The notes below the pieces were generated by a model that was given only the letters and a program-made list of their open reading frames with translations, was not told where the DNA came from and searched no databases. This document shows positions 24,432-64,000 of a stretch of DNA of 64,000 nt, one piece after another. Positions within the stretch are counted from its first letter, which is position 1. Each line of letters begins with the position of its first letter. Origin of the DNA: Lepidodermella squamata (Eukaryota; Animalia; Gastrotricha); contig JBLDXI010000029.1 in assembly GCA_047495785.1 (NCBI GenBank), positions 186,001 through 250,000 of the forward strand. The letters run 5' to 3'. The position numbers were made by a program, and so were the translations under genes.

Positions 24432-25874
24432 TCAAGCCACTGCGCGTTGCTCCGCCCTTTTTTTGGCCCTCGCGACACTTGATTGCTTCAGGCTACCAAG
24501 AATAATCGCTCCAGCTTTCGAATGGACTACCGTATTGTGAGATTTCAGACCCCGAGGCGTCAGTTTTCGAACGTGGCATATTTGACATACGTAATTGCAC
24601 AGTTCTTTATGTTCACGTTCAATATGCCTCATGCGAGCTTTGTAGCTGTCGCTAACTTTGCCACAAGTTAAACACTCGAAAAATCGACAATGGCGATCTC
24701 TCTTCTTGCAGTAATTGTAACCGTGCACATAGAATTCCTCAACAGTGAGCATTTTCCTACCACAGTCCTTACACTGGAAATTAAGTTGGTTAGGATGGTT
24801 TTCTCGGTAGTGTATCCTCAAATTGTCCAATCGAGCGTAGACAGCCTCGCATTCGTTGCAGCGGTGATTTGCTACTACCGCATTCCCTTTCAACCGCCTT
24901 AATCGGCTCACAATGCTTTCAGACTTCCCTGAATGCATCTGTTTGTGCCGCAGTAGCGACACGTGATCGGATTTCGCACGCTGGCATATGTCACACACGA
25001 ACTTGCACAGGTCACGATGATGGTAATCGAAATGCTTCATGAGAGCAGCCCGGCTCACGCTGAGGAAACCGCACGCCGAACATGCAAACGGCCCATTCTT
25101 TCGTTGCAGCCGTGTTCCGGCGCACTTCAGCTGCTCATGCGCGTATAAATCATCTGCCGTCAAGTATTTCATCTTACAAAAGCGGCATTCAAACTTTAGC
25201 GCTTTGATGTGCTTCAGGCGGTAGTGATGGACCATGACGTCTTTTCGGCCGAAACTTCCGTTACATTCAGAGCACGAGAAGAGGCCGAGTTTCTTCTTGC
25301 TTGGCCGGCAATCGTGAGCTCGAAGCGTGGCGTTCACCCGATAGTAATATCCGCAATCCGGGCAAACTTTGTCGCATCTGTCGCCTTCAGTCGACTCGGG
25401 ATGCCACTTCCGTACATGGCTCACTAGATCATTGCTATGGCGGTAAGACCTTAGACACAAAGTGCACTTGAATTTCGATAAAAATCCTCGTCTCCATTTA
25501 CAAACTGCTTCATGCATATTTTTCGATGTCGGGTTATTGTGAACCTTTGCGCAGAACTGACACGGGAATTCCTCAGATGATGAATGCAATTTGCCGACGT
25601 GATTTGAAAACGCGGCTCCTGTTTCGAACGAAATGTTGCACGTAGAGCAGTAGTGCTTCGTGATCATGGGCGACGGCTTGTGCGGTCTCGCGGTGTGCAT
25701 GTGCAGACCAAGCAACGTGTAGAACCGGCGAGGGCACATGGTACATGCGTAGTTGCAGTGATCCTCATGTTTACGCTGCAAGTGCTTCCCAAGGCTTTTC
25801 TTGTAGTTCGCCGAGCATAAGTGGCACTGATAGCGACCTGTCGGAGTCCGACAGAATCGGGATTTGCGTGTCAT
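24432..25874 (-). CDS. Intronless multi-zinc-finger protein, paralog 1 (14 fingers: 10 C2H2 + 4 C2HC)
   Basis: Likely ATG at 25874 (MTRKSRFC). Repeated CxxC-x12-H..H/C units with the same finger order as the genes at 34937 and 45923. Confidence 0.9.
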   Translation of the reverse strand: MTRKSRFCRTPTGRYQCHLCSANYKKSLGKHLQRKHEDHCNYACTMCPRRFYTLLGLHMHTARPHKPSPMITKHYCSTCNISFETGAAFSNHVGKLHSSSEEFPCQFCAKVHNNPTSKNMHEAVCKWRRGFLSKFKCTLCLRSYRHSNDLVSHVRKWHPESTEGDRCDKVCPDCGYYYRVNATLRAHDCRPSKKKLGLFSCSECNGSFGRKDVMVHHYRLKHIKALKFECRFCKMKYLTADDLYAHEQLKCAGTRLQRKNGPFACSACGFLSVSRAALMKHFDYHHRDLCKFVCDICQRAKSDHVSLLRHKQMHSGKSESIVSRLRRLKGNAVVANHRCNECEAVYARLDNLRIHYRENHPNQLNFQCKDCGRKMLTVEEFYVHGYNYCKKRDRHCRFFECLTCGKVSDSYKARMRHIEREHKELCNYVCQICHVRKLTPRGLKSHNTVVHSKAGAIILGSLKQSSVARAKKRAEQRAVA

Positions 25875-26276
25875 GGTTAACTGCGGTACAACACAATCAA
25901 TTACTGCAAAAATACTTGCTTCTAAAAATGAAATATTACAGCATTTTCGAACCAAGGAAAAAATCAGCGAGGATTCCGTTTTACAGCTATCGGCCAAGAT
26001 GAGCTTGCATCTTGAGGAGTGGCCACAGCAGGCGTGCGCGCCTAGTTAGCACACCGGTGATGCCAGCGCATTCCATCGTGAATCCGTGAGTCTAAACCTA
26101 ACTAACGGATGCGCTGGAAAAACTTTTTATGCGCCGTACCCCTTCTTCCGGTTAACTCAGGAGGGCAGGATTTTTGATAGATCAGACTGCGGATTCAACG
26201 TTACATCAGCTTTTATTGTAACAACAGCTTTCATTACAAACGCTCCGAATAAATTTGAGAAAAATTCAGGCCAGCT

Positions 26277-34580: not shown

Positions 34581-34936
34581 ATTATTTTCTCACCTTGAAT
34601 GTCGATTAAAATAATTTGTTGTGATCACTCTTCACGCCATTGATCGGTGCGGTTGTGAGTGCTGGAATATCAAGCACTTTCCGCACTACATATTAATTTA
34701 GGGCTAAGGGCTAAGCAGAGGATATGCTGTGGCGAATGTCTAACCTGCAATTCATTCAGATCGAGTTTTGATTTAGAATTTAGAATTTAGTCGACTTTAT
34801 TTACAGGGGATATGGCACTAATACAAAAGAACACATTCTCTTTATAGATATAGAAAATGAAAAATGAAATGAAAAGCTTTCTTATTTTTGGTATATTCTC
34901 GTGATTAATAGGAAGTTAATTAGTGACAGGGCTAAA

Positions 34937-36433
34937 ATGAAGAAAGTGGAGCGTCGTGTCGCTGCATCTGCAAGCAGTCGCCGGAGAAAGTCCGAAGGAG
35001 CAGGCAAGAAAGTATGGCGATGTCGGTACTGCAAACGGCCGTATCTCAGCGCTCAGAGCCTGTTCTGTCACATCCAGCAATGGCATCCTGACAAGTGTCA
35101 ATATCCTTGCAACGGTTGCAAACGGAAATTTTTCTCGAAAACAGCCTTGAAAAGGCACGCCTTCATAGTTCACAGTACAGCGGAAGTAAACAAATCTTTC
35201 CACTGCGTCCCATGCGATCTTCTCCTGGAGTCGGAACAAGACTTCAGCCAGCACGCAGGGGAGAAACATTCCGCTAATTCAGATGTCACCTGCTCGTTTT
35301 GCCTAGCCGAGCTCAAATCGCCTCTTGGGAAAAATTGCCACGAGGCAGGCTGTGCGTTCCGAAGAAAACCATCGAAGTTGCAGTGCCCACACTGCCCAGG
35401 CTCGTATCGCCATTACGGCAGCCTTCATTATCACATCCGACTCTCACACCCGCAATCCGGCGATGGCGAGAAGTGCGACAAAGTTTGTACCACATGTGGG
35501 GTCTATTTTCGAGTGGAAGCCTCATTCAAGGCTCACAAATGCCTGCCTAAAGCCACTACGCCTCATTTCTGCTCGGAATGTGAGACATATTTCGGCCGAA
35601 GGGACGTCATGGTTCAGCACTATCGAAGAAAGCACCGCGATGCAATGAAGTTCAAGTGCAAAGCTTGCAACCTGAAATTTCTCTCTTTTGAAGATTTGTG
35701 TTCTCATGAGCAGCAGTCGTGCCGTAAACTTCTGCCCGACCGTATTAAGGGACCGTTTCCATGCTCAGCGTGCGACTTTGTTTGCATCAGCCGGCAAAGT
35801 CGATCCAAGCACTATGAAAATCGACACGGAGACCTTTGCACATTTGTCTGTAAAATATGTAACAAGGCGAAGCCTTCGGAGAAATCTTTGAATCAGCATG
35901 TCATTATGCATAAGCGAGCTGATAGACTCAAGCTGCCTCAATTGCTTCGGGCGAAACGTGCGCTGGAATCTCCTCATTCTGTAGCGTCCTACTCTTGCAG
36001 CGAATGTGAGGCGGAATTCTTCCGAAAAGAAGGACTGCTGAAGCACTACCGGCAGCTGCATCTGGACGCCCTCAAATTCGAATGTGCAGACTGCAGAATG
36101 CGATTTCTAGCGTCTGAAGATTTGCTCGTGCATGATCAGAAGCATTGCAAGGAGAAGGATCGCGTCAACGGGCCTTTTCCGTGCGCAGCCTGTGAATTCG
36201 TCGCCGTGAGCCTGGCCAGCCGCCTGAAACATTTCGAGAAGAAGCACAACGAATTATGCGAGTACGTCTGCGAAATTTGCAATCGGCGGAAGCAGACGCC
36301 TCGGGCTTTGAACTCCCACAAAACGGTTTCTCACTCTGTCAAGAAGGATATCATCCTTTCGAGCTTGAAGCGTGGTCACGCTTTGAAACGAGCGTCAATA
36401 CTGGTTAAACCTGCCGATGACGATTGTTCCTAA
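34937..36433 (+). CDS. Intronless multi-zinc-finger protein, paralog 2 (14 fingers)
   Basis: ATG at 34937 (MKKVERR). Colinear with paralog 1, e.g. CSEC..FGR.DVMV.HYR.KH..A.KF.C and GPF.CSAC.F. Confidence 0.9.
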   Translation: MKKVERRVAASASSRRRKSEGAGKKVWRCRYCKRPYLSAQSLFCHIQQWHPDKCQYPCNGCKRKFFSKTALKRHAFIVHSTAEVNKSFHCVPCDLLLESEQDFSQHAGEKHSANSDVTCSFCLAELKSPLGKNCHEAGCAFRRKPSKLQCPHCPGSYRHYGSLHYHIRLSHPQSGDGEKCDKVCTTCGVYFRVEASFKAHKCLPKATTPHFCSECETYFGRRDVMVQHYRRKHRDAMKFKCKACNLKFLSFEDLCSHEQQSCRKLLPDRIKGPFPCSACDFVCISRQSRSKHYENRHGDLCTFVCKICNKAKPSEKSLNQHVIMHKRADRLKLPQLLRAKRALESPHSVASYSCSECEAEFFRKEGLLKHYRQLHLDALKFECADCRMRFLASEDLLVHDQKHCKEKDRVNGPFPCAACEFVAVSLASRLKHFEKKHNELCEYVCEICNRRKQTPRALNSHKTVSHSVKKDIILSSLKRGHALKRASILVKPADDDCS

Positions 36434-44600: not shown

Positions 44601-45923
44601 TCAGCTCATTCCTAGATGCACAGTCGAAACGTGGGCCAGGAGAGCCCTGCGAGTTAACGTTCGTGCCTTGCAAATTTCACACACATAGTCGCATAGCTCG
44701 TTGTGAACTCTCGCGAAATGCCTCAACCGTCCCCTGGAGCTCCGAGATACAAATTCGCAGGCTGAACACTTGAAGAGAGGGCCAGGATCGCGTTTAGAAC
44801 AACGCAGCTCGCCGTGAGAAGCAAGGTCACCGGATGTCAAAAACTTCAATTTACACGTGCTACATTGAAATTTGAGTTGATCCGAATGCCTTCGCCGATA
44901 ATGCTTCATGATATAATCCCTGCGATGGAAGTTTGCATTGCACACAAGACAAGAGTAAGTCGATTTCCTAATAGCACGCTCTGGCTTAGTTCCACCTGCT
45001 TTCAGCTCGGGGTGGCTGGTAAAGATGTGCTTATCCAAAGTCATTTGCGTCATCTTGGGGCGTTTGCAGATATCGCAGACATACTTGCATAATTTTGGGT
45101 GGAGCTTTTCGAAGTGGCCAACCAGAGTAGGTCTACTCCTACAAATCACATTGCAGGCAGAACATGGAAATGGCCCCATTGAAGGTAACTGTCGACATGT
45201 CAGCTGCTCATGGCAAGCTAAATCATCGGAGGTCAGGAATCCAAGTTTGCAGTACTGGCACATGACTTTCAGCACGGTCGGGTGGAGCTGCCGCAAGTGT
45301 ACAAGTAAAGCCCGCTTGCTTCTCAACAGACTGTCGCATTCACTACAGACGGAATCAGCCAGCTTGGTGCGACACTTGTGATACTTGTGCGACGCAACTC
45401 TCCAAAAGCGCTTCCCGCAAGTTCGGCAAACAATTTTCGCCTTGCCATTCTTTTCGGGATGCAATATTTGAATGTGGCAAAGTAATTTGTGAATGCTGGT
45501 GAGATATTCAGGACAGAACATGCATCCGAAGGGGGTGGCTCTTAGCTTTTGCTGCTTGCATCCCCATTCGTGGTTGTTTCTTGACTGAGTTGATTTCAGT
45601 TCGATGGCGCAAAACCGACATGTAACATCGGATTTCCCCGAGTGGATCGCTTTGAAATGTTCATCAAAGCTGGTGTCAGAAGAAAAGGTCTCATCGCATG
45701 GAACACAGTGATATGACGGGTTGAGCGTTTCTTTGTTATGATTACGGCTGTGGTGCTGGCCCAAAGATCTGCTTGAAGTTAAGCGTTGGGGACAGATGCC
45801 GCACTGAAACTCGCATTTTTCAGGATGTTTGCCCTGAACGTGCAGCAAGTGACCACTCGGGGACGTGTATGATTTTGAACAGAAACTGCAATTGAACGGC
45901 GGCTGCTTCTTATTTCGGCTCAT
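44601..45923 (-). CDS. Intronless multi-zinc-finger protein, paralog 3 (14 fingers)
   Basis: Likely ATG at 45923 (MSRNKKQPPFNC). Same finger order and linkers (HP.KC.F.C, SDVTC.FC..ELKS, ELCDYVCEIC). Confidence 0.9.
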   Translation of the reverse strand: MSRNKKQPPFNCSFCSKSYTSPSGHLLHVQGKHPEKCEFQCGICPQRLTSSRSLGQHHSRNHNKETLNPSYHCVPCDETFSSDTSFDEHFKAIHSGKSDVTCRFCAIELKSTQSRNNHEWGCKQQKLRATPFGCMFCPEYLTSIHKLLCHIQILHPEKNGKAKIVCRTCGKRFWRVASHKYHKCRTKLADSVCSECDSLLRSKRALLVHLRQLHPTVLKVMCQYCKLGFLTSDDLACHEQLTCRQLPSMGPFPCSACNVICRSRPTLVGHFEKLHPKLCKYVCDICKRPKMTQMTLDKHIFTSHPELKAGGTKPERAIRKSTYSCLVCNANFHRRDYIMKHYRRRHSDQLKFQCSTCKLKFLTSGDLASHGELRCSKRDPGPLFKCSACEFVSRSSRGRLRHFARVHNELCDYVCEICKARTLTRRALLAHVSTVHLGMS

Positions 45924-46312
45924 ATTTACAGTCGCGGATGAGTTAGAAGTTAGAAGAGCAAGTCGCTTCGACAATTCTATTATTTTATCTAGATAAGAGA
46001 ACCTAAAAACAACAACTCTGACTAATGATGATGGAAAACATAAAACATTACAACAAAGTTAAAATCCGTGAATGTTTTAGTCGCTTCAGTAAAGACTGCT
46101 GGTAGAACTTCAGTGCTCAGTGATTCTGAATTGAAAATTCGCACCTCTACAATGTACGCCGCCGGTGCACTAATGTGCCCAAAGGGTTGCGCACTCCTTC
46201 AAGTTCTGCTCTTTCAGCGATAATGAGAAACTCATTCTAAATCTAAATTCAAATGTATTTGTTCATTAGTCATTATTGGTCGATTTCATTTCAATTTGAT
46301 CTAATAGGGTTA

Positions 46313-50370: not shown

Positions 50371-52654
50371 ATGTTTTCAATAATTCTACTTTTTGTGATT
50401 GGTCTCGGTAGCTCAACTACGGCTACATGGGTCCACCCGGAAAGTCTGGAGCTCTTCGCCGTAATGGACGGAAAAAATGGTGTGAACGACCTGTCAGGCA
50501 AGCAGAAAATCAGCTCCAGCAGCGATGCGGTGGTGAATTCCAACTACAATGGCCCTTTCAACGAGCCACAGTCGAGCTACACCGTCAAACTGAATAACAA
50601 AGCCATAGTTGAGTACAACACCACCAAGAACACGTACAGAAGCTTCACCTACACGATGTACTACAGGGCTTATACCTATGATACTGCTGGCATTTTTTCC
50701 GAGCAAAACACTGCGCCGAGAAGACTCGGTCTCATACGGCGAGAATATACGCTGGAAATTCACGGCTACAGCGGGACTCAAGAGAAATTCTCATCGAACC
50801 GCGTTGAGAAAGCCGAAGATTTCTTCAGATCCGCCGATTGGCATTTCATCGCTGTTACCTATGACGACGCTAGTAATGAAGTAACCCTCTACGACTCAGC
50901 TGGTTTTGTTAAGAAGAGCTTCAAAAACTTCCACATCGAGTCGAATTCCACGACAGGCTACGTTGTCGGCAATGCGAGGGATAGAAATGGCAATTCGTAT
51001 GGTTTGAAATCAAACGAAGCCATGGCTTGCGTGACAGTTCACAGCTCTGTTCTCAGCCCGTCTGAAATAAGCCAGCTGAGTGATGCCTGCAAATACAAGG
51101 GCGAGTACCCGCCAAGGTGGCCTTCGACCGACAACTTGATGGCCGTGTGGCCTCTCACCAATAAACACAAGTTCACAGATTTGAGCAAGAATGACTACTC
51201 GCCCAAATTCCCGACAAACGGCAATTACGTCCCTGTCAATGGTCCTTTCGGAGGGGAGCTCAACGCAATCATGCCAATAAAGGACATGCAGACCGAAATG
51301 TTCGTAGTATCGCATCCGGCGTTCAAAACTAGCAAGAAGTCTTTCACAGTCTCATTTTTCCTCAAGCTGGATAAAAAGGACTCGAAAGGAGGGATATTTC
51401 AGTTTATTTCGCAGGTGGGTTCCTCCGCTGGACTTCCACAAATTCACTACTCCGGAAATAAGGTTACCCTATCCGTCGGGAAAACCGTTGCGGGTACTGC
51501 AATGTTGAGCTCAGACTCTGTCTGGAATTTTATCAGCTTCAGCTATGACGGATATTCGCAGCTATTGACTGTTTACAACAAGCACGGTGTCGCTTACAAG
51601 AGTACAGACACGATCTCGATCGATATAAGCAATCAGGTTAATGGTGCGCAAGTTGGATATGCCTCCACAGCCGGTGGTTTGGCGCGTGCAGACAGCCTGT
51701 CCTGCTTTTCGGTTTACTACTCAGACCTATCCTGGCCCGAGGTTCAGCGTCTGATCAGCGCCTGCCGGAACACACACGAAGTCACGATGCCCGGACAGCC
51801 GAAGTTGCCGCTGTCACCGATTCCAGCTCACACGTCGACTTCGGCTCAAATCCCGCGAGCGGGCCAGTTTCCGTGGCTCGGCGTCCTTAGCAACGTATTC
51901 GGCAATGAAACCATGTGCACTGTTTCGATTATCGACGAACTGTGGGTCCTAACCTCGGCTAAATGCGTGAATTCAAGCGATGCATACAAGCTTCCAGTTG
52001 TGACCGGCGTTCACGATTTCGCAGTCTCTTCTGTCTACAAAAAGACGCATGCCATCTCCGACATTATTCAATCCGGTTTCTCCGAACGCGACATAGCTCT
52101 CCTGAAATTGAAATCACCAATCGACATGACCTCAGTATATGTAAACGACATTTCGATCTTCGGCAAGGATTCTAATAATGTCGACCAGAGTTCGTTCCAA
52201 TTCATAGCCGGCTGGGGTAAAAATGGCCGATCCGGCCCGACGAGTAAAACGCTGCCGAGATATGTCCATGGCGTGAAGGTGGACGATGAGAACTGTGTGA
52301 TTTCGTGGAATAACACAGACAGGTTCGAACCAGCGACTGACAGCTGTTTCCAAGCTGCTACTCGAGATTTGAATGTGCCCTGCGACGGTGACGAAGGCTC
52401 ACCGCTCATGTTCCAATCGCTTAACGACGCGAAATCAGGATTTGGAGACAGCCTTTTGCAGGTAACAATCATGGCTAATGATGTACGATAGTTTATCAGT
52501 TTTATTGTTTATTTTTTAGTACGGAATATATTTCGGCCGCGATGAGAAGTGCTCGGCGAATAAGTTGCCGCTGTTTGTGGACCTCGAACCCTTCGGGTCG
52601 TGGATTTCGGACAGGCTAATATGCGACATTGCCTGGGACAAGCCGAACTGTTAG
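50371..52654 (+). CDS. Secreted protein: 2 LamG/pentraxin-like domains plus a catalytically dead trypsin-fold domain (741 aa)
   Basis: Exons 50371-52461 and 52520-52654. Signal peptide; two repeats with GPF..SFT...WHFIAVTYD / WNFISFSYD; S1 motifs GQFPW, WVLTSAKC (His->Lys), DIALLKL, AGWG, CDGDEGSPL (Ser->Glu). Confidence 0.88.
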
Positions 52655-56109: not shown

Positions 56110-57019
56110 TACTACCATCTTTACGAGGTCTGCCACGGGACCCGTCGGTTTTTTTTCTTATTATATTTTCTGTTGTAAGTCCTACTTTACTTAAACTTCT
56201 TTCAACCGCACCTTGAACCGCAACAGCCATCTAGTTCGAGGTTTCCCCACCGGTCTCTTCCATTCCTTAGGCGCAACCCACCTATATATAGGTCGTAGAC
56301 TGGCCCCGGTGGTGTCGGTTCACCTTTGTCGTCGACATAGGTCTCCATCCTTATTATATGAACTAGGTAATTAAGGCGTCGTTTTTCAATTAGTCTACCG
56401 ACTTCGATAATGTCGCCGCACATTGATAGTCTTTTATGTCTATTTTGGGAATGTAGTCCATTACAGTAATTCCTACATTTCATCGCAGCCATTTATATTC
56501 TTGGGTATTTAGCGCCCTTTCCTCGTCTTCGGTCATATTCCATGACTCACATGCATAAATCATTGCTGGAATAATAACGCATTTTAAATTTTACCGCCAA
56601 AGAGACATGTTTTCGATTGCACAGGAATGAACTTATCGCGCCAAAACAATTACCTGCTTTCGCAATGCGCGCTTTTAGTTCCTCGCAAATCTTCCCATCA
56701 TCAGTTATAATATGGGACACGGTGGCTCAGTTGGGTCGTTGAGCTACTGTGTATCTGAGGGGATATCGCTCGGGACTGGGTTCAAGTCCTAGTGACAGAA
56801 CCAGGATCGAGTCCCCCCCCCCCCCCCCCTCGGCCCCGCGGTGGTTTTACCAATCCATCGCGTTACAAAATAGAAAATTGGGAGGCTGGGAGTGTCAGCT
56901 AGACTGCACCGGTCGAAATCCGTCATACGGAAATTTTCATCTCAATCTCTTACGATAAGACCTAGGGTTAGAGTAAGTGGCATGCCCTTCTAGTCCTCAA
57001 AGTTCGCTTTGAAAAAGAA

Positions 57020-57094
<75 letters not shown>

Positions 57095-57245
57095 CTACCT
57101 AAGTCCTTGAATGGGCCTACTTTTTCAAGATCTAATTGCAAGTTATATTTTTCATTTTTCTTTGAGTCCCCTCCTATAATCATATATTGAGTCTTCGACG
57201 CGTTAATTTTGAGACCTAGTTCTTTGCCGCGTCGCAAATTCCTAG
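56110..57245 (-). mobile_element. Decayed non-LTR retrotransposon (RTE-like) RT C-terminal fragment, interrupted by a SINE
   Basis: GLKINASKTQYM, LEKVGPFKDLGSI|TDDGKICEELKARIAKAG, RRLNYLVHIIRM and GSRGRP motifs, broken by frameshifts and stops. Confidence 0.85.
56714..57093 (+). mobile_element. tRNA-derived SINE with (ATT)n tail
   Basis: GGG start, A-box TGGCTCAGTTGG (56723-56734), B-box GGTTCAAGTCC (56779-56789), poly-C tract, ~24 ATT units (57020-57093). It splits the LINE LGSIIT codons. Confidence 0.8.
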
Positions 57246-57661
57246 TAACGTCTGCTGAACCATGGATGACAAACCACACTTTAAACGCACATAATATATT
57301 ATTTTTGTGCTCAGGTGACCATTAATCGACACCGAAATGCGGAAGCCCAGATCTAGAGTGTTCTTATTTTCGCTTGGATTTTACAGTATTCTATCGACTT
57401 GATAACTATTTTCGGCCCGGATAAAATAAGGACCTTCGTAAGGTCAAAGAATGGCAGATGTTCGAGCTAACTTGGGCCAGACGTCTAAATTCGACTTGTG
57501 CCGTGACACGCGCGCTTGCTGTCCGCAAAATAATATATAACACATGGCTCTACTCGCTTTATAAACTATTTCAATTCACTCTAACGTGACTTTTGAAAAT
57601 TCATTTTCCCAACAATTCCTCAGCTTACCTGTTTGTTTAAAATTGACAACATTGCGTCAAC

Positions 57662-60600
57662 ATGAAGACCTTCACTGGTGGGGCGATTACGCTCGCCTTG
57701 TTCATGGCTCTAGTCATGAGCCAGCTGGTAACTGCGAAACAAGAACAGTGAGTTCATTGCTTTTTCTTATTTCTTAAAGTCCAAATAAATCGAAATCCCT
57801 GCATACCAGCAGATATAGTATTAGTATTCAGTAGGTAGTTTTTTATAAAATAATTTTCATTTTTTAGTTCTACATATTTTCCGTTTTAAATTATGTGAAA
57901 CCTCTAAGTAGTGCATTTTTCTATCACATGTTGTCGTTTCAAACAATTTTGCCATTCATTAATTTTCACCGTCCATTTTCAAACTCTTTCGATTTTTATT
58001 CAATGAATCCTTGACCTGTTATTTTTACTCCAACAGTGAAAAGCGCCATCACGATAATTCCGCAGAACATGGCTCTCACGCTATTCATGGGTCGTCGGAT
58101 TCCGAGAAGCCTGTCAATCAAAAGCCGGCAAGCATCACTGCTGTAAAGTTCAGCGATGCTGCAGCTCGCGGCGATCTGGCCGAAATTCGCAAAATGCTGG
58201 CCGCGGGCGATATCAACATCAACGCTGCTGATGACCGCGAGACTGAAGGCGGCAAGTTGAAGGGCGCTACACCTCTTCACCGAGCGATTGCTAACAAAGC
58301 CGCGAAGATCGACGTCATCAAAGCTCTGATCACAGCTGGAGCTGATATCGAAGCTCGCGATTCGTTAAATGGCGTCACGCCCATCGGAGTCGCTGCAGCT
58401 GCTGGGAATCTTGAAATTCTGCGATTGCTGATCGATCGCGGCGCGAACGTTGATGCGACGACTGAGCAGAACAACCACACGCCGTTGATGATTGCCGTGA
58501 TTTACAACCACGTCGAAAGCGCGAAGCTTCTGCTCGACCACGGCGCTAATATCGAAGCTCGGCAGAAGAACGGTTACACAGCTCTTCACTACGCTGCGTC
58601 AGTCGGCAATGTTGACATGGTCAGCCTTCTGTTGAACCGTGGTGCTGACATCGATCCACTGGAGAATGAAGGCCGCTCGCCTCTGATGATTGCGACGAAC
58701 AGCGATAACGCCTTGGCAGTGGCGAAGAAGCTTCTAGAACGGGGTGCTGATGCCAATATTGAGGCAAAAAATGGCTACACTGCGCTGACTTTTGCCGAGG
58801 CGAGCAAGAAGCAAGATGTTGTTACTCTCATTAAGAAATACGCCGTGAGTCATTTTTCACTTATTCTTAATTTTCCAATTTTTTGTTTGTTTCCCTTAGG
58901 ATAAAGCCAGCCAATTACCGAAGAAGAAGCACCGTCGCGAAACCGGCAGCTCAGAAGAAATCGAGTCCAGTGATGAAGAGAAGGTGAAATTCCGTCAAAT
59001 TCAAAAATTTCATGCTGACTTTTCTGTTGTCTTTCTGGGTTAAGGCTGAAAACGGACGATTGCTCGGCGAAGCGGTTGTGCAGGGCGATCTAAAGGCAGT
59101 CAAAGACCTGCTGAAATCCGGCGAAGTCGACATCAACTGGCAAGACGCTCGTGAAACCGACGGAGGCACTCTGCAGGGCGCAACTGCTCTTCACCGAGCT
59201 ATCGCTAACTCGGTATCAATCAATGTCATCAAGGCGCTGATCTCAGCTGGAGCTGACGTCGAAGCCCGTGAGACCAAGGGTGGAATCACGCCGCTTGGAG
59301 TTGCCGCTGCTACTAACAACCTAGAAGCTATCAAGTTTCTGCTCAATGGCGAGGCTAACATCGAGGCGAAGTCTCAGAAGCAAGGCGACACGCCGCTGAT
59401 GATCGCAATTATTTTCGGCAAGCTCGGCGCCACTAAGCTTTTGCTGGAGAAAGGAGCCAACATCGAAGCTCGAAACAGTGAGGGCTACACACCTCTTCGC
59501 TATGCGGCTACTGTCGGCGATGTCAAGATTCTAGAGCTGCTTTTGGAAAATAAAGCGAAGGTCGACGCTATCGATAATTCGGGTGCCACGCCTTTGATGA
59601 TCGCGAGCTACAATGGGGCGAACGAGATCGTTCGAAAGCTGCTCGAACATGGCGCGGATGTGACCATCAAGTCGAAGACTGGCGAAACGGCGCTTGATCT
59701 TGCCAAACTTCAACATAAAACTGAAACTGCCAAGATCCTAACTGCGCATAAGGTATAATTTAGCGTTTGGCATGTTGTTTTTCGAATTTTTCTCATATCG
59801 TGAAGAGTTTAACGCATGCCTTTCGTGTTTTCTATAGGTTACTTCTCAGGCTGAATCTACATCGAACGAAGGCGATGTTCAAGCTAAACAGCAGCAACTG
59901 TTGGACGCAGCTGGTCGTGGCAACTTGCAAGAAGTAAAGCGATTGTTGTCGCTTGGAAATCTCGACCTCGACTGGAAGGACGCAAACGGACTTGCGGCGA
60001 TCCACAAGGCGGTCATCTCGAAGATTCCTCAAGTCGTGGCGGCTCTGTTGGATGCTGGAGCCGATATCAACGCTCGAACCGCCGACGGCGCAACGCCGCT
60101 GATCGAAGCCATCTACCACAAGGCGAAAGACGTTGTGAAGTTGCTGCTTGAACGAGGAGCTGATATAACCATAGCGAAGACTGATGGAGCTAATGCTCAA
60201 AACTTTGCCGGGTGGAGCGGTGATAGCGAGATGATCAAGCTTCTTCAAACCCACAGCAGCAATGTAAGTTTAACTCTTGCCCTAATTTCTACCCGTAGCA
60301 ACATTTGTTTGCCTTTATCCTTAGTCATTTCATGATCGATTGTACAAATTCCCAACTTAATGTAGCATTATTTTCCGAAATTTGATTTTAATTAACTTTC
60401 TCATTTATATAGGCTCATATTGCCAACTTGAAACCAGCGACCGCAAATCAACAACAGGAGCTGAATAATGCCGCTGCGAAGGGCGATCTGGTGAAAGTGA
60501 AGAAATTACTCGCCTCGGCCAAGTTCGACCTCAGCTGGAAAGACCGATGGGGCATCAACGCTTTGCACAAAGCGGCTTACGGCAAGAATGCTGGTGTGGT

Positions 60601-60814
60601 GGTGGCTTTGCTGGATGCCGGCGCTGACATCAACGCTCGGCGAGATGATGGCGCGACGGCTTTGATCGAAGCCGCGTTCTACGGAGCTACCGATGTCGCC
60701 AAGCTGTTGCTCGAACGTGGGGCCGACAAGACAATCGAGAAGGAAACCGGCGAAACTGCGCTCGACTTTGCGAAGATGAAAGGACACGATGAAATCATTG
60801 CACTGCTTCAGTAG
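57662..60814 (+). CDS. Signal-peptide-bearing ankyrin-repeat protein with four capped modules (7+7+4+4 repeats; 837 aa)
   Basis: Exons 57662-57747 (MKTFTGGAITLALFMALVMSQLVTA-KQE), 58037-58844, 58900-58983, 59045-59752, 59838-60263, 60413-60814; GT-AG and phase-consistent. Consensus GxTPLHxA..LL..GA.I.A repeats. Confidence 0.88.
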
Positions 60815-61226
60815 TGGAACTTCGGTGTATGAAGTGTCAACGAACATAATTTTGATTTATAAATGATGCCACTCCGTCGAGTGAAAATCCGTTTTAATAA
60901 ACTTGGGTATTACTGTTTGCTTTATTTTTCAACATTCGATTCGACCCAATGTCGAGAACCTAATTTAGCGGTGGTTAATGTTCAACAGTTCTGACATGAG
61001 ATGCATTGAAAGATTGTTATGCTGAGAGCGACTTTTTAATAGGCTTTTGACAGGAAAATGTTTTATACATAACTATTATGCTACATAGAGTATAAGTAAG
61101 CCAATAATGAAGCCGAATAGATGAGGCTTTCTCTTGCTGCAGAATTAAATTCAAGTGCATACACGTGTGAGTAAATTAGTGAGCTTCAAAGCTCATTGCA
61201 TGCAATTGCTTTGAATTAGCTCTTAT

Positions 61227-62396
61227 CTACGAAAAGTAGCCATTCTGCCTAGCGACGTTGACGGCGTAGATATTAATACTCAAGAAGAATAGCGTCGCAG
61301 CTATAACACCAAAGAGATCGCTAATTCTGGCAGTGGACATCGTTAAGAACGGGAAAGCTGCCGGAGGGTTTTTAAGCCGCTGTCGATATGTTCTAGCGAT
61401 GGCCAGCATAACGAGCGAATAAACGGTACAAGCCCATGAGAAAAGTGATAGTAAATCAGTGTAATTTCCAATGAAAATGCGTCGGGGTTTTTGAGGGATC
61501 TTGCTCAACACTTGGCCCTGAAGAAATGTAAGTGCTAACAAAATCGTGATGGAGAACATCGGGCGATCGGGGACAGAGGGCGGAATAACGAAGCCCACGA
61601 GTTGAAGGCTCGACACCAACAGGCCAGGTAACATGAGGTTGAAAATGTAGTATTCCGGTTCTCGTTTAAAAGTCATCTCAAAGGCTACAAAACTTCGTTC
61701 TCCAATTATAGTGACAATGCCCGAACTTGCCCACCAGTTGACAAAGGTCCAGCCAGAACCGGCGCTCTCTGCCATGAAATCAAAATATGAAACATTGTAT
61801 CTGAAATCTAAATAATTTGCGATTGTGCATTCTGGTAACTCTTGTAGTACAAAAGAAATTGTGCACGTCTGATTATCGAAAGGAAACCACGTGTAATCCA
61901 TAGGACAATGGGAAGTAAAAACTCCGATCCTTTGCCAGAAAAAGTGCACAACCGACGGCTCATGTTCTGTAATATTTGGCGGGCCAATACTGGAGTACAA
62001 ACGGCTCGTGAACCCATCTTTCATTCGAAAATCTAGAACAGCATTTCTATGATGCATTCTCGGTTTCCAAATTTTCGATTCATCTACGAAGAATGTTAAA
62101 CCCCGGTCAGGGCGGAAGTTTTCACACGTTGCTACCCAATGGACAGATAATGCCGCAGATATTGTGAGTGTTTCTTCCGCATCATCCATATCGTGGAATC
62201 TTAGAGGTGTCAAATCAATCGTGATATTCGTAAAATTGCTATCGATGAACGACGGGCCTTCGACGCACGTTGGCGAGTAGACATATGGTCTTATGCTGGA
62301 ACAATTCCTAACCAACTCTTTGTCCAAATCTAACGCCATGCAATTCTGAGACGTGATGAGTGGGTGCAATATAGCAAAGGTCAGAAAGGGCTTCAT
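61227..62396 (-). CDS. Intronless, divergent Cys-loop ligand-gated ion channel subunit (389 aa)
   Basis: Signal peptide, IWKP, Cys-loop CPMDYTWFPFDNQTC, FKREPEYYIFNLMLP (M1), M2 DRPMFSITILLALTFL, four TM segments. Confidence 0.9.
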   Translation of the reverse strand: MKPFLTFAILHPLITSQNCMALDLDKELVRNCSSIRPYVYSPTCVEGPSFIDSNFTNITIDLTPLRFHDMDDAEETLTISAALSVHWVATCENFRPDRGLTFFVDESKIWKPRMHHRNAVLDFRMKDGFTSRLYSSIGPPNITEHEPSVVHFFWQRIGVFTSHCPMDYTWFPFDNQTCTISFVLQELPECTIANYLDFRYNVSYFDFMAESAGSGWTFVNWWASSGIVTIIGERSFVAFEMTFKREPEYYIFNLMLPGLLVSSLQLVGFVIPPSVPDRPMFSITILLALTFLQGQVLSKIPQKPRRIFIGNYTDLLSLFSWACTVYSLVMLAIARTYRQRLKNPPAAFPFLTMSTARISDLFGVIAATLFFLSINIYAVNVARQNGYFS

Positions 62397-63050: not shown

Positions 63051-64000
63051 TTAGTTTCCGCAAATACTAGGGAAATTCCCAGCGCATCCCGTTTTATCGG
63101 CGCCACGATCTATCAGCATTTGCGCTGTGCTAATCTGACCATAACGAACTGCATACAGCAACGCAGTCCAACCGTTGTTCGGGTTCTTAGCATCGATATT
63201 CGATCCGCGATCCAGCAGGAGCATAGCAATCTCGGTGTTGCCTTTATAACTCGCTGTCATCAGGGGTGTCATGCCCTGGCCATCGGAAGTGTCTGGTTGC
63301 GCGCCTTTATCAAGCAGTAGCCGCACTGATTCGAGCCATTTAGTGCCATTTGACACGCCGGATGCAAGGTGAAGGGGGGTGAAGTCACCGGTTGGAGTTC
63401 GCGACTGAACGCCCACTTGAGCATCGAGTAAGTATCGAATTGTGACGTAATGACCATCAACACAAGCCTGCCACAATTCCTGATATTCAAATTATGAATC
63501 TCTAAGAGAATTGACTAGAAAGGTAACTAACACCGGCGTTGATTCTACCACTATCTGGTGGAACCGCTATGGTTCCGCAAGACTGCTCGTCTGATGAATC
63601 GCCGCAATCGTCGGCTTCGTCGCATTGCCGGCTGTAAGCGATACAAAGGCCAGACTTCGGACTTCCATCTGGGCATGTGAACGATTGACACCCAGGCGTT
63701 GTGTTAACAGCTTGCGTTGTAGCAACTGTGGTGGTCCTGGTAGTTGTGGGAATAACAGCTGGACGGGTAAAAGTAAATCGAACAGTCGATCGAGTTGAAC
63801 TGCTAACAACATCTTGAAAAGGGGCTTTAACGTAGAAATTCAACCCGAAGTGCTGAACTTACTAACTACAGCTTGGCGTTGGCACAAGCCAGCCTGAGTC
63901 CAAGTCCCATCGCTGCGGCAGAAAACGTTCGGCTGCCCGACTAATTGAAAGCCGTCATTACAAGTAATCGCCCTAGTCAATCCGTTTGTTCCGGCCACTT
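63051..64000 (-). CDS. 3' part of a CCP-Ser/Thr linker-LDLa-ankyrin protein; 5' end outside the window
   Basis: Exons >64000-63863 (ITCNDGFQLVGQPNVFCRSDGTWTQAGLC, CCP), ~63812-63532 (Thr-rich, then LDLa CQSFTC..GLCI..QCDEADDCGDSSDEQSC) and 63479-63051 (about 4 ankyrin repeats), joined by ~50-bp GT-AG introns in frame. Confidence 0.85.

Follow-up and report, generated by a model that had tools for sequence, protein, structure and literature searches.

To our knowledge, the ankyrin repeats of animals are nearly all intracellular, and they are treated as such. In some described systems, ankyrin repeats work away from the cell that makes them. The latrotoxins of widow spiders, with about 20 ankyrin repeats, are animal proteins of this kind and act outside that cell, and the ankyrin effectors that bacteria, oomycetes and plasmodiophorids secrete, often in expanded families, act inside host cells. 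Full-text searches of the literature gave no account of secreted ankyrin families from rotifers or any other free-living animal. We analysed a gene at positions 57662-60814 of the forward strand in a 64,000-nucleotide stretch (the window) of contig JBLDXI010000029.1 (C29) from the gastrotrich Lepidodermella squamata. The gene is expressed and probably encodes a soluble, cleaved and secreted ankyrin-repeat protein; ankyrin stacks exported from an endogenous, expressed and selected gene would differ from the way in which these repeats are treated in animals.

The gene has six exons, all on the forward strand. Exon 1 (57662-57747) encodes MKTFTGGAITLALFMALVMSQLVTA|KQE, a signal-peptide-like start with a predicted cut after VTA (before 57737), and ends in phase 2. 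Exon 2 opens with about 36 non-ankyrin residues rich in His and Ser (58037-58145), beginning with (H)EKR|HH, and its remainder (58146-58844) is module 1, which consists of seven ankyrin repeats with their own N- and C-terminal repeats and a hairpin insert at 58224-58268. Exon 3 (58900-58983) is a 28-codon linker, DKASQLPKKKHRR|ETGSSEEIESSDEEK, in which a furin-type motif (58921-58938) is followed by an acidic Ser cluster, SSEEIESSDEE. Module 2, with seven repeats and a beta-hairpin finger at 59138-59182, makes up exon 4 (59045-59752), and the two shorter modules of four repeats each are preceded by polar linkers of about 20 residues in exon 5 (59838-60263, module 3) and about 15 residues in exon 6 (60413-60814, module 4), the latter ending with the stop codon TAG at 60812-60814. 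The 3′ untranslated region (60815-60915) carries AATAAA at 60896-60901 and ends at the poly(A) site at 60915. Introns 1-5 measure 289, 55, 61, 85 and 149 bases, all five are bounded by GT..AG, and the six-exon model stays in frame; intron 1 splits a His codon (CA|T), and introns 2-5 are all in phase 0, as had been proposed for the introns between modules, so that exons 3, 4 and 5 are symmetric (0-0). By its letters, TATAAA at 57560-57565 (+), about 100 nucleotides before the start codon, is a candidate TATA box. No ATG lies between this box and 57662, the exon 1 ATG being the first one downstream of it, and no in-frame ATG lies upstream of the ankyrin part within exon 2. At the DNA level, exon 1 occurs once in the genome.

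We compared window positions 57400-61100 with three public sequencing runs, X1, X2 and X3. X1 has zero depth in introns 1-4 and almost none in intron 5, and its loose end at 60915 consists of an A-run and a SMART cDNA-synthesis oligo, and it was therefore taken as complementary DNA (cDNA). All five splice joints are found in X1 contigs, exactly at the modelled places, and a single contig extends from exon 2 across exons 3 and 4 and reaches exon 5, so that it includes both joints that flank exon 3. The joint 60263/60413 is also present in X3, which comes from a different study. X2 is genomic and covers the whole locus, introns included. The transcript joins the six exons in one mRNA, with every joint and a poly(A) tail. 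The in-frame splicing of exon 1 to exon 2, on which the original prediction of a secreted protein depended, is seen as an RNA junction at 57747/58037 in an X1 contig.

The genomic run also contains a second haplotype, about 2.2% diverged (window 58083-59704 and 60166-60173). Variants of this haplotype are present in X1 RNA contigs at 58083, 58089, 58091 and 58209, and both alleles seem to be transcribed. Over 58041-59568, the haplotypes differ at 21 of 341 synonymous sites and 11 of 1,069 non-synonymous sites; the resulting ratio of non-synonymous to synonymous differences per site (pN/pS) of about 0.17 indicates purifying selection, and 4 of the 11 non-synonymous differences fall in the 36-residue stretch before the ankyrin part. 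A codon-based test for diversifying selection among the paralogues was set aside, as these are 30-50% identical and their synonymous sites are saturated. X2 further shows a 7-base insertion directly after 58983, in intron 3, and an extra contig about 90% alike over 60181-60605 (exons 5-6), in which a stretch of intron 5 is replaced and exon 6 carries a 73-for-15 base replacement. This contig possibly represents an additional, diverged copy that the assembly lacks.

We then examined the N-terminus by hand rules. It has a basic residue, K2, followed by an 18-residue uncharged stretch, V-T-A|K (V at -3, A at -1) and a polar continuation. In a 19-residue Kyte-Doolittle window, the value of 1.6 is exceeded at the N-terminus only (1.88), the maximum elsewhere being 1.54. 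The flanks of the hydrophobic stretch carry charges of +2 on the N-side and 0 on the C-side, which favours a lumenal position of the C-terminal side under the charge-difference rule for membrane orientation that Hartmann reportedly set out in 1989. The protein ends in ..IIALLQ, with neither a KDEL signal nor a hydrophobic C-terminus. None of its 837 residues is a Cys, compared to 1.4% Cys in 16 paralogous frames (P(0) ~1e-5), which fits a fold that is obliged to avoid stray disulfides. Hence, the protein is, as had been claimed, free of Cys, of a further transmembrane segment and of a retention signal for the endoplasmic reticulum (ER).

The spliced protein contains 22 ankyrin repeats arranged as 7+7+4+4, according to a hand segmentation and AlphaFold. 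A Pfam search made exon by exon found solely ankyrin families, in exons 2, 4, 5 and 6 (E 1e-41, 9e-42, 5e-22 and 3e-18; PF00023 scores of 139, 139, 52 and 61 bits against a cut-off of 21), and no match in exons 1 and 3. AlphaFold was run on modules 2 and 4 as single modules, with paralogues as the alignment in the case of module 2. The model of module 2 has seven helix pairs, with a predicted local distance difference test (pLDDT) score of 96.2 and a predicted template-modelling (pTM) score of 0.92, and that of module 4 has four helix pairs (pLDDT 95.6, pTM 0.88). Both are confidently modelled as self-contained stacks with the form of a stacked, L-shaped solenoid. For module 2, Foldseek gave ankyrin structures as all of its top matches, namely designed ankyrins, DARPins and AnkB/AnkG (template-modelling (TM) scores 0.83-0.88). 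Together, the Pfam matches per exon, the segmentation and the two models bear out four separately capped stacks. They also form duplicate pairs, modules 1 and 2 being 48% identical and modules 3 and 4 57% identical, and the first pair shares an insert, D-x-R-E-T-x-G-G-x-L-x-G-A-T, which is modelled as a two-stranded beta-hairpin between repeats 1 and 2 (strands 34-38/43-46 in module 2). The linkers between the modules are polar and 15-35 residues long.

The N-cap together with this hairpin was used to search the genome, and about 18 modules were found, 13 of them on C29 itself. Sixteen modules, from contigs C29, C54, C42 and C85, were aligned (A1) and share the signature VDVNW(R/Q)D, then the hairpin, then (N/G)(A/G)TALHRA; in 10 of the 16, the hairpin tip, immediately ahead of TALH, carries an N-x-T sequon. 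By its signature, the gene is a member of a lineage-restricted hairpin-finger subfamily. One relative, L043:1213-1986 (+), which is C85:273771-274544, has in a single uninterrupted frame a Sushi/CCP domain (Pfam 23.9 bits) and then an ankyrin module of the hairpin subfamily. Sushi domains are disulfide-bonded extracellular modules. This fusion in one frame and the sequons at the hairpin tips argue for a lumenal or extracellular site. Signal-like first exons are also present in ankyrin genes nearby, as is a Sushi exon, and the genome has more than 240 ankyrin matches in all; together with the intron positions that the paralogues have in common, this number points to an ankyrin expansion inside the animal lineage. 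Among 15 aligned seven-repeat modules, the canonical six binding positions are more variable than the others (2.49 versus 1.65 bits, Mann-Whitney p = 1e-8), as one would expect of binders.

At the edge of the window, a further ankyrin exon (63051-63476, minus strand) begins an adjoining ankyrin gene cluster that reaches about C29:307000. Within C29, the letters that precede a paralogous ankyrin module at L017:4540-5000 (-), which is C29:294540-295000, allow two readings, a signal peptide (MNKMKMVLLMLCIFQG) and the end of an intron, tctttcag|GGG, and the latter reading joins an upstream Sushi exon in phase. The start at C29:294639 (-) had been considered as splice-free proof of a signal and was given up, since these letters also make a good intron end. 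T-rich intron ends, as this case shows, can look like signal peptides.

In the explanation that we favour, residues 1-25 would serve as a signal peptide and be cleaved off after V-T-A, and the Cys-free stacks would fold in the ER lumen and leave the cell as four binding modules joined by flexible polar linkers. Each module would present its concave ankyrin surface, which the beta-hairpin finger would extend in both seven-repeat modules, and a single furin-type convertase cut at KKKHRR|E might free module 1 from modules 2-4, with possible trimming at EKR|HH. The gene would then be a pure-ankyrin member of a large genome set that joins ankyrins to export signals and extracellular domains. The most likely role of its product would be that of a soluble, multivalent binder of extracellular ligands, in recognition or in the matrix; immune, symbiont-control or toxin roles are guesses. 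The layout of the N-terminus with V-x-A, the flank charges, the zero Cys count, the Sushi-ankyrin relative and the sequons in relatives make an extracellular or lumenal destination likely, and the claim of a secreted-type ankyrin protein is kept at that strength. Designed ankyrin proteins function as extracellular receptor parts according to one report (PMC4678647), which makes the biophysics of a secreted ankyrin protein plausible.

Several points weigh against a secreted protein of this kind and against its use as a binder. The hairpins of modules 1 and 2 lack the sequon of their relatives, having a G there, and the whole protein holds one N-x-T, at N146 of exon 2. The best same-frame signal paralogue, at C29:294639 (-), is ambiguous, and the exon 1-2 joint of the gene itself is known from one X1 contig, which has 46 bases on the shorter side of the joint. 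Ankyrin families in general vary strongly at their surface positions, and for this reason the variability is no proof of a binder repertoire. The length of the uncharged stretch, fairly long at 18 residues, its Kyte-Doolittle value and flank charges that favour an N-in/C-out orientation would also suit an uncleaved type II signal anchor, which would display the modules on the cell surface or in an organelle lumen and not release them. However, V-x-A followed by a polar stretch is the standard layout for cleavage and the stretch contains a Ser and a Gln, so that we regard such an anchor as quite unlikely. The ankyrin part would be outside the cytosol under either reading, cleaved or anchored. 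An ordinary cytosolic ankyrin protein, in which the start would be no signal or would be a tether with the repeats toward the cytosol, would conform to the general knowledge on animal ankyrin repeats and to the fact that this gene has a single sequon and no disulfide domain. It is nonetheless rather improbable, since the flank charges oppose an N-out/C-in orientation, an alternative start codon is absent, and Cys depletion, Sushi fusion and conserved sequons are all found within the same subfamily. Finally, the protein could be exported and act within cells of a different organism, be it prey, host or symbiont, like the microbial ankyrin effectors. Large, clustered, fast-diverging families of signal-plus-ankyrin genes do resemble effector repertoires, but we saw no delivery apparatus or uptake motif, and the Sushi-fused relatives suggest work in the extracellular space, which makes an effector very unlikely.

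Two further claims of the original prediction concern the processing and the origin of the protein, and neither fares as well as secretion itself. The basic sites are present where they had been described, EKR|HH after the signal and KKKHRR|E in the dedicated linker exon 58900-58983, and KHRR is the sole [RK]-x-[RK]-R of the protein. It lies outside the folded modules, in the 28-residue linker of exon 3, although a motif alone is no proof of cleavage. These sites, and ten genomic matches to the P-domain family of convertases, would be in line with a polyprotein from which convertases release four free DARPin-like binders. Contrary to this, a basic pair is absent from linkers 2 and 3, the remaining K/R-R pairs lying inside repeats, and two paralogous 7R-7R genes share the intron position behind the C-cap but lack a linker exon, one module being joined straight to the next. 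The KKKHRR linker exon, judged by this comparison, is a private addition of this gene. As one of the three linkers has a furin-type site, cleavage, if any, would occur at most once, between module 1 and modules 2-4, and a four-way cut is highly improbable. One module per exon is no rule of the family either, since the paralogues L039 and L040 carry a seven-repeat and a four-repeat module in one exon, behind a Thr-rich linker. As for origin, a whole-exon homology search returned 4,448 matches, all of them generic, consensus-like ankyrins with identities of 49% or less; the search was uninformative on orthology. The best outside matches of module 1 include bacterial lipoprotein-type ankyrins with 43-49% identity, as would be expected for a recent bacterial ankyrin gene that gained its introns later. 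However, the gene's own modules are identical to each other at the same level, which reflects the ankyrin consensus, and none of these outside matches has the hairpin signature. A profile of the N-cap and hairpin, run against 1.84 billion representatives, found the strict signature in none of the best 150 matches, which does not prove its absence; these 150 are giant multi-repeat proteins that score via many partial matches. Signature scans of JGI metagenome contigs (370 pattern matches) and of prokaryotic genomes, one for each of 185,579 species (28 pattern matches), gave no relative, and none of the 20 candidates from a region-restricted search of 5.8 billion proteins scored. One of the 150 profile matches, P0357, was rejected, as it has a loose W-R-D...TALH match only. 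Since the intron positions common to the paralogues and the size of the ankyrin set also count against it, a recent bacterial origin is extremely improbable, and horizontal transfer is not supported, although the searches leave an ancient event possible.

The surroundings of the gene were also examined. Just upstream, at 56968-57279, a reverse-transcriptase fragment (..KINASKTQYMIIG..) runs into a long ATT-type microsatellite. Downstream, tail-to-tail with the ankyrin gene, 61227-62396 on the minus strand is an intronless frame of 389 codons in which Cys-loop channel domains are weakly matched (Neur_chan_LBD E 1e-10). Further away, the frame at 50371-52491 (+), of 706 codons, combines Laminin_G_3 (a ConA-like lectin domain) with a trypsin domain, and three long single-exon frames at 24432-25997 (-), 34901-36433 (+) and 44601-45974 (-) encode C2H2 zinc fingers. 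Elsewhere in the genome, L024:1399-2859 (-), on contig C17, is a divergent, intronless EF1A-like paralogue of 487 residues, the canonical intron-bearing EF1A being on C7. The EF1A of this genome is divergent for an animal, with identities of 78% or less to named animals and of 85-88% to metagenome proteins. COX1 is missing from the assembly, and searches run without a positive control gave no match to the arthropod cuticle R&R or the nematode collagen N-domain family.

An extracellular ankyrin protein in this animal would raise the question of its ligands, and the cleanest case for a test is this gene, as it consists of ankyrin repeats only and has RNA for every splice joint. Compared with the described systems, the protein shares the solenoid fold of the membrane-binding domain of AnkB, AnkG and ankyrin-1 (5y4e and 7uzu, TM score 0.87). 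The canonical ankyrins differ in being cytosolic adaptors with one continuous 24-repeat solenoid and with ZU5, UPA and death domains, none of which was found by Pfam in this gene. The latrotoxins resemble it as an animal protein with about 20 ankyrin repeats, but their single ankyrin array is accompanied by a large wing/body region at the N-terminus, whereas here about 36 non-ankyrin residues follow the signal, Pfam finds ankyrin repeats only, and the array is divided into four stacks. Like the microbial ankyrin effectors, the protein combines an export signal with ankyrin repeats; unlike them, it is the product of an intron-bearing animal gene with Sushi-fused relatives. A broader proposal, which we consider unlikely, is that ankyrin stacks serve this animal as an extracellular recognition scaffold, of which this gene would be a soluble, four-headed member that owes its valency to exon duplication and perhaps undergoes one convertase cut. 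If this were true, the scaffold would be the natural equivalent of the DARPins, and its logic would be comparable to that of the leucine-rich-repeat receptors of jawless fish. The DARPins and designed consensus ankyrins share with this protein the Cys-free, self-capped short stacks and the variability at the same surface positions, and they include its nearest folds (4o60 and 6moj, TM score 0.83-0.88). The natural gene differs from them in having four stacks per chain, of seven and of four repeats, a hairpin finger and its own signal exon, and evolution would, if the protein is indeed secreted, have reached the design that engineers chose for the DARPins.

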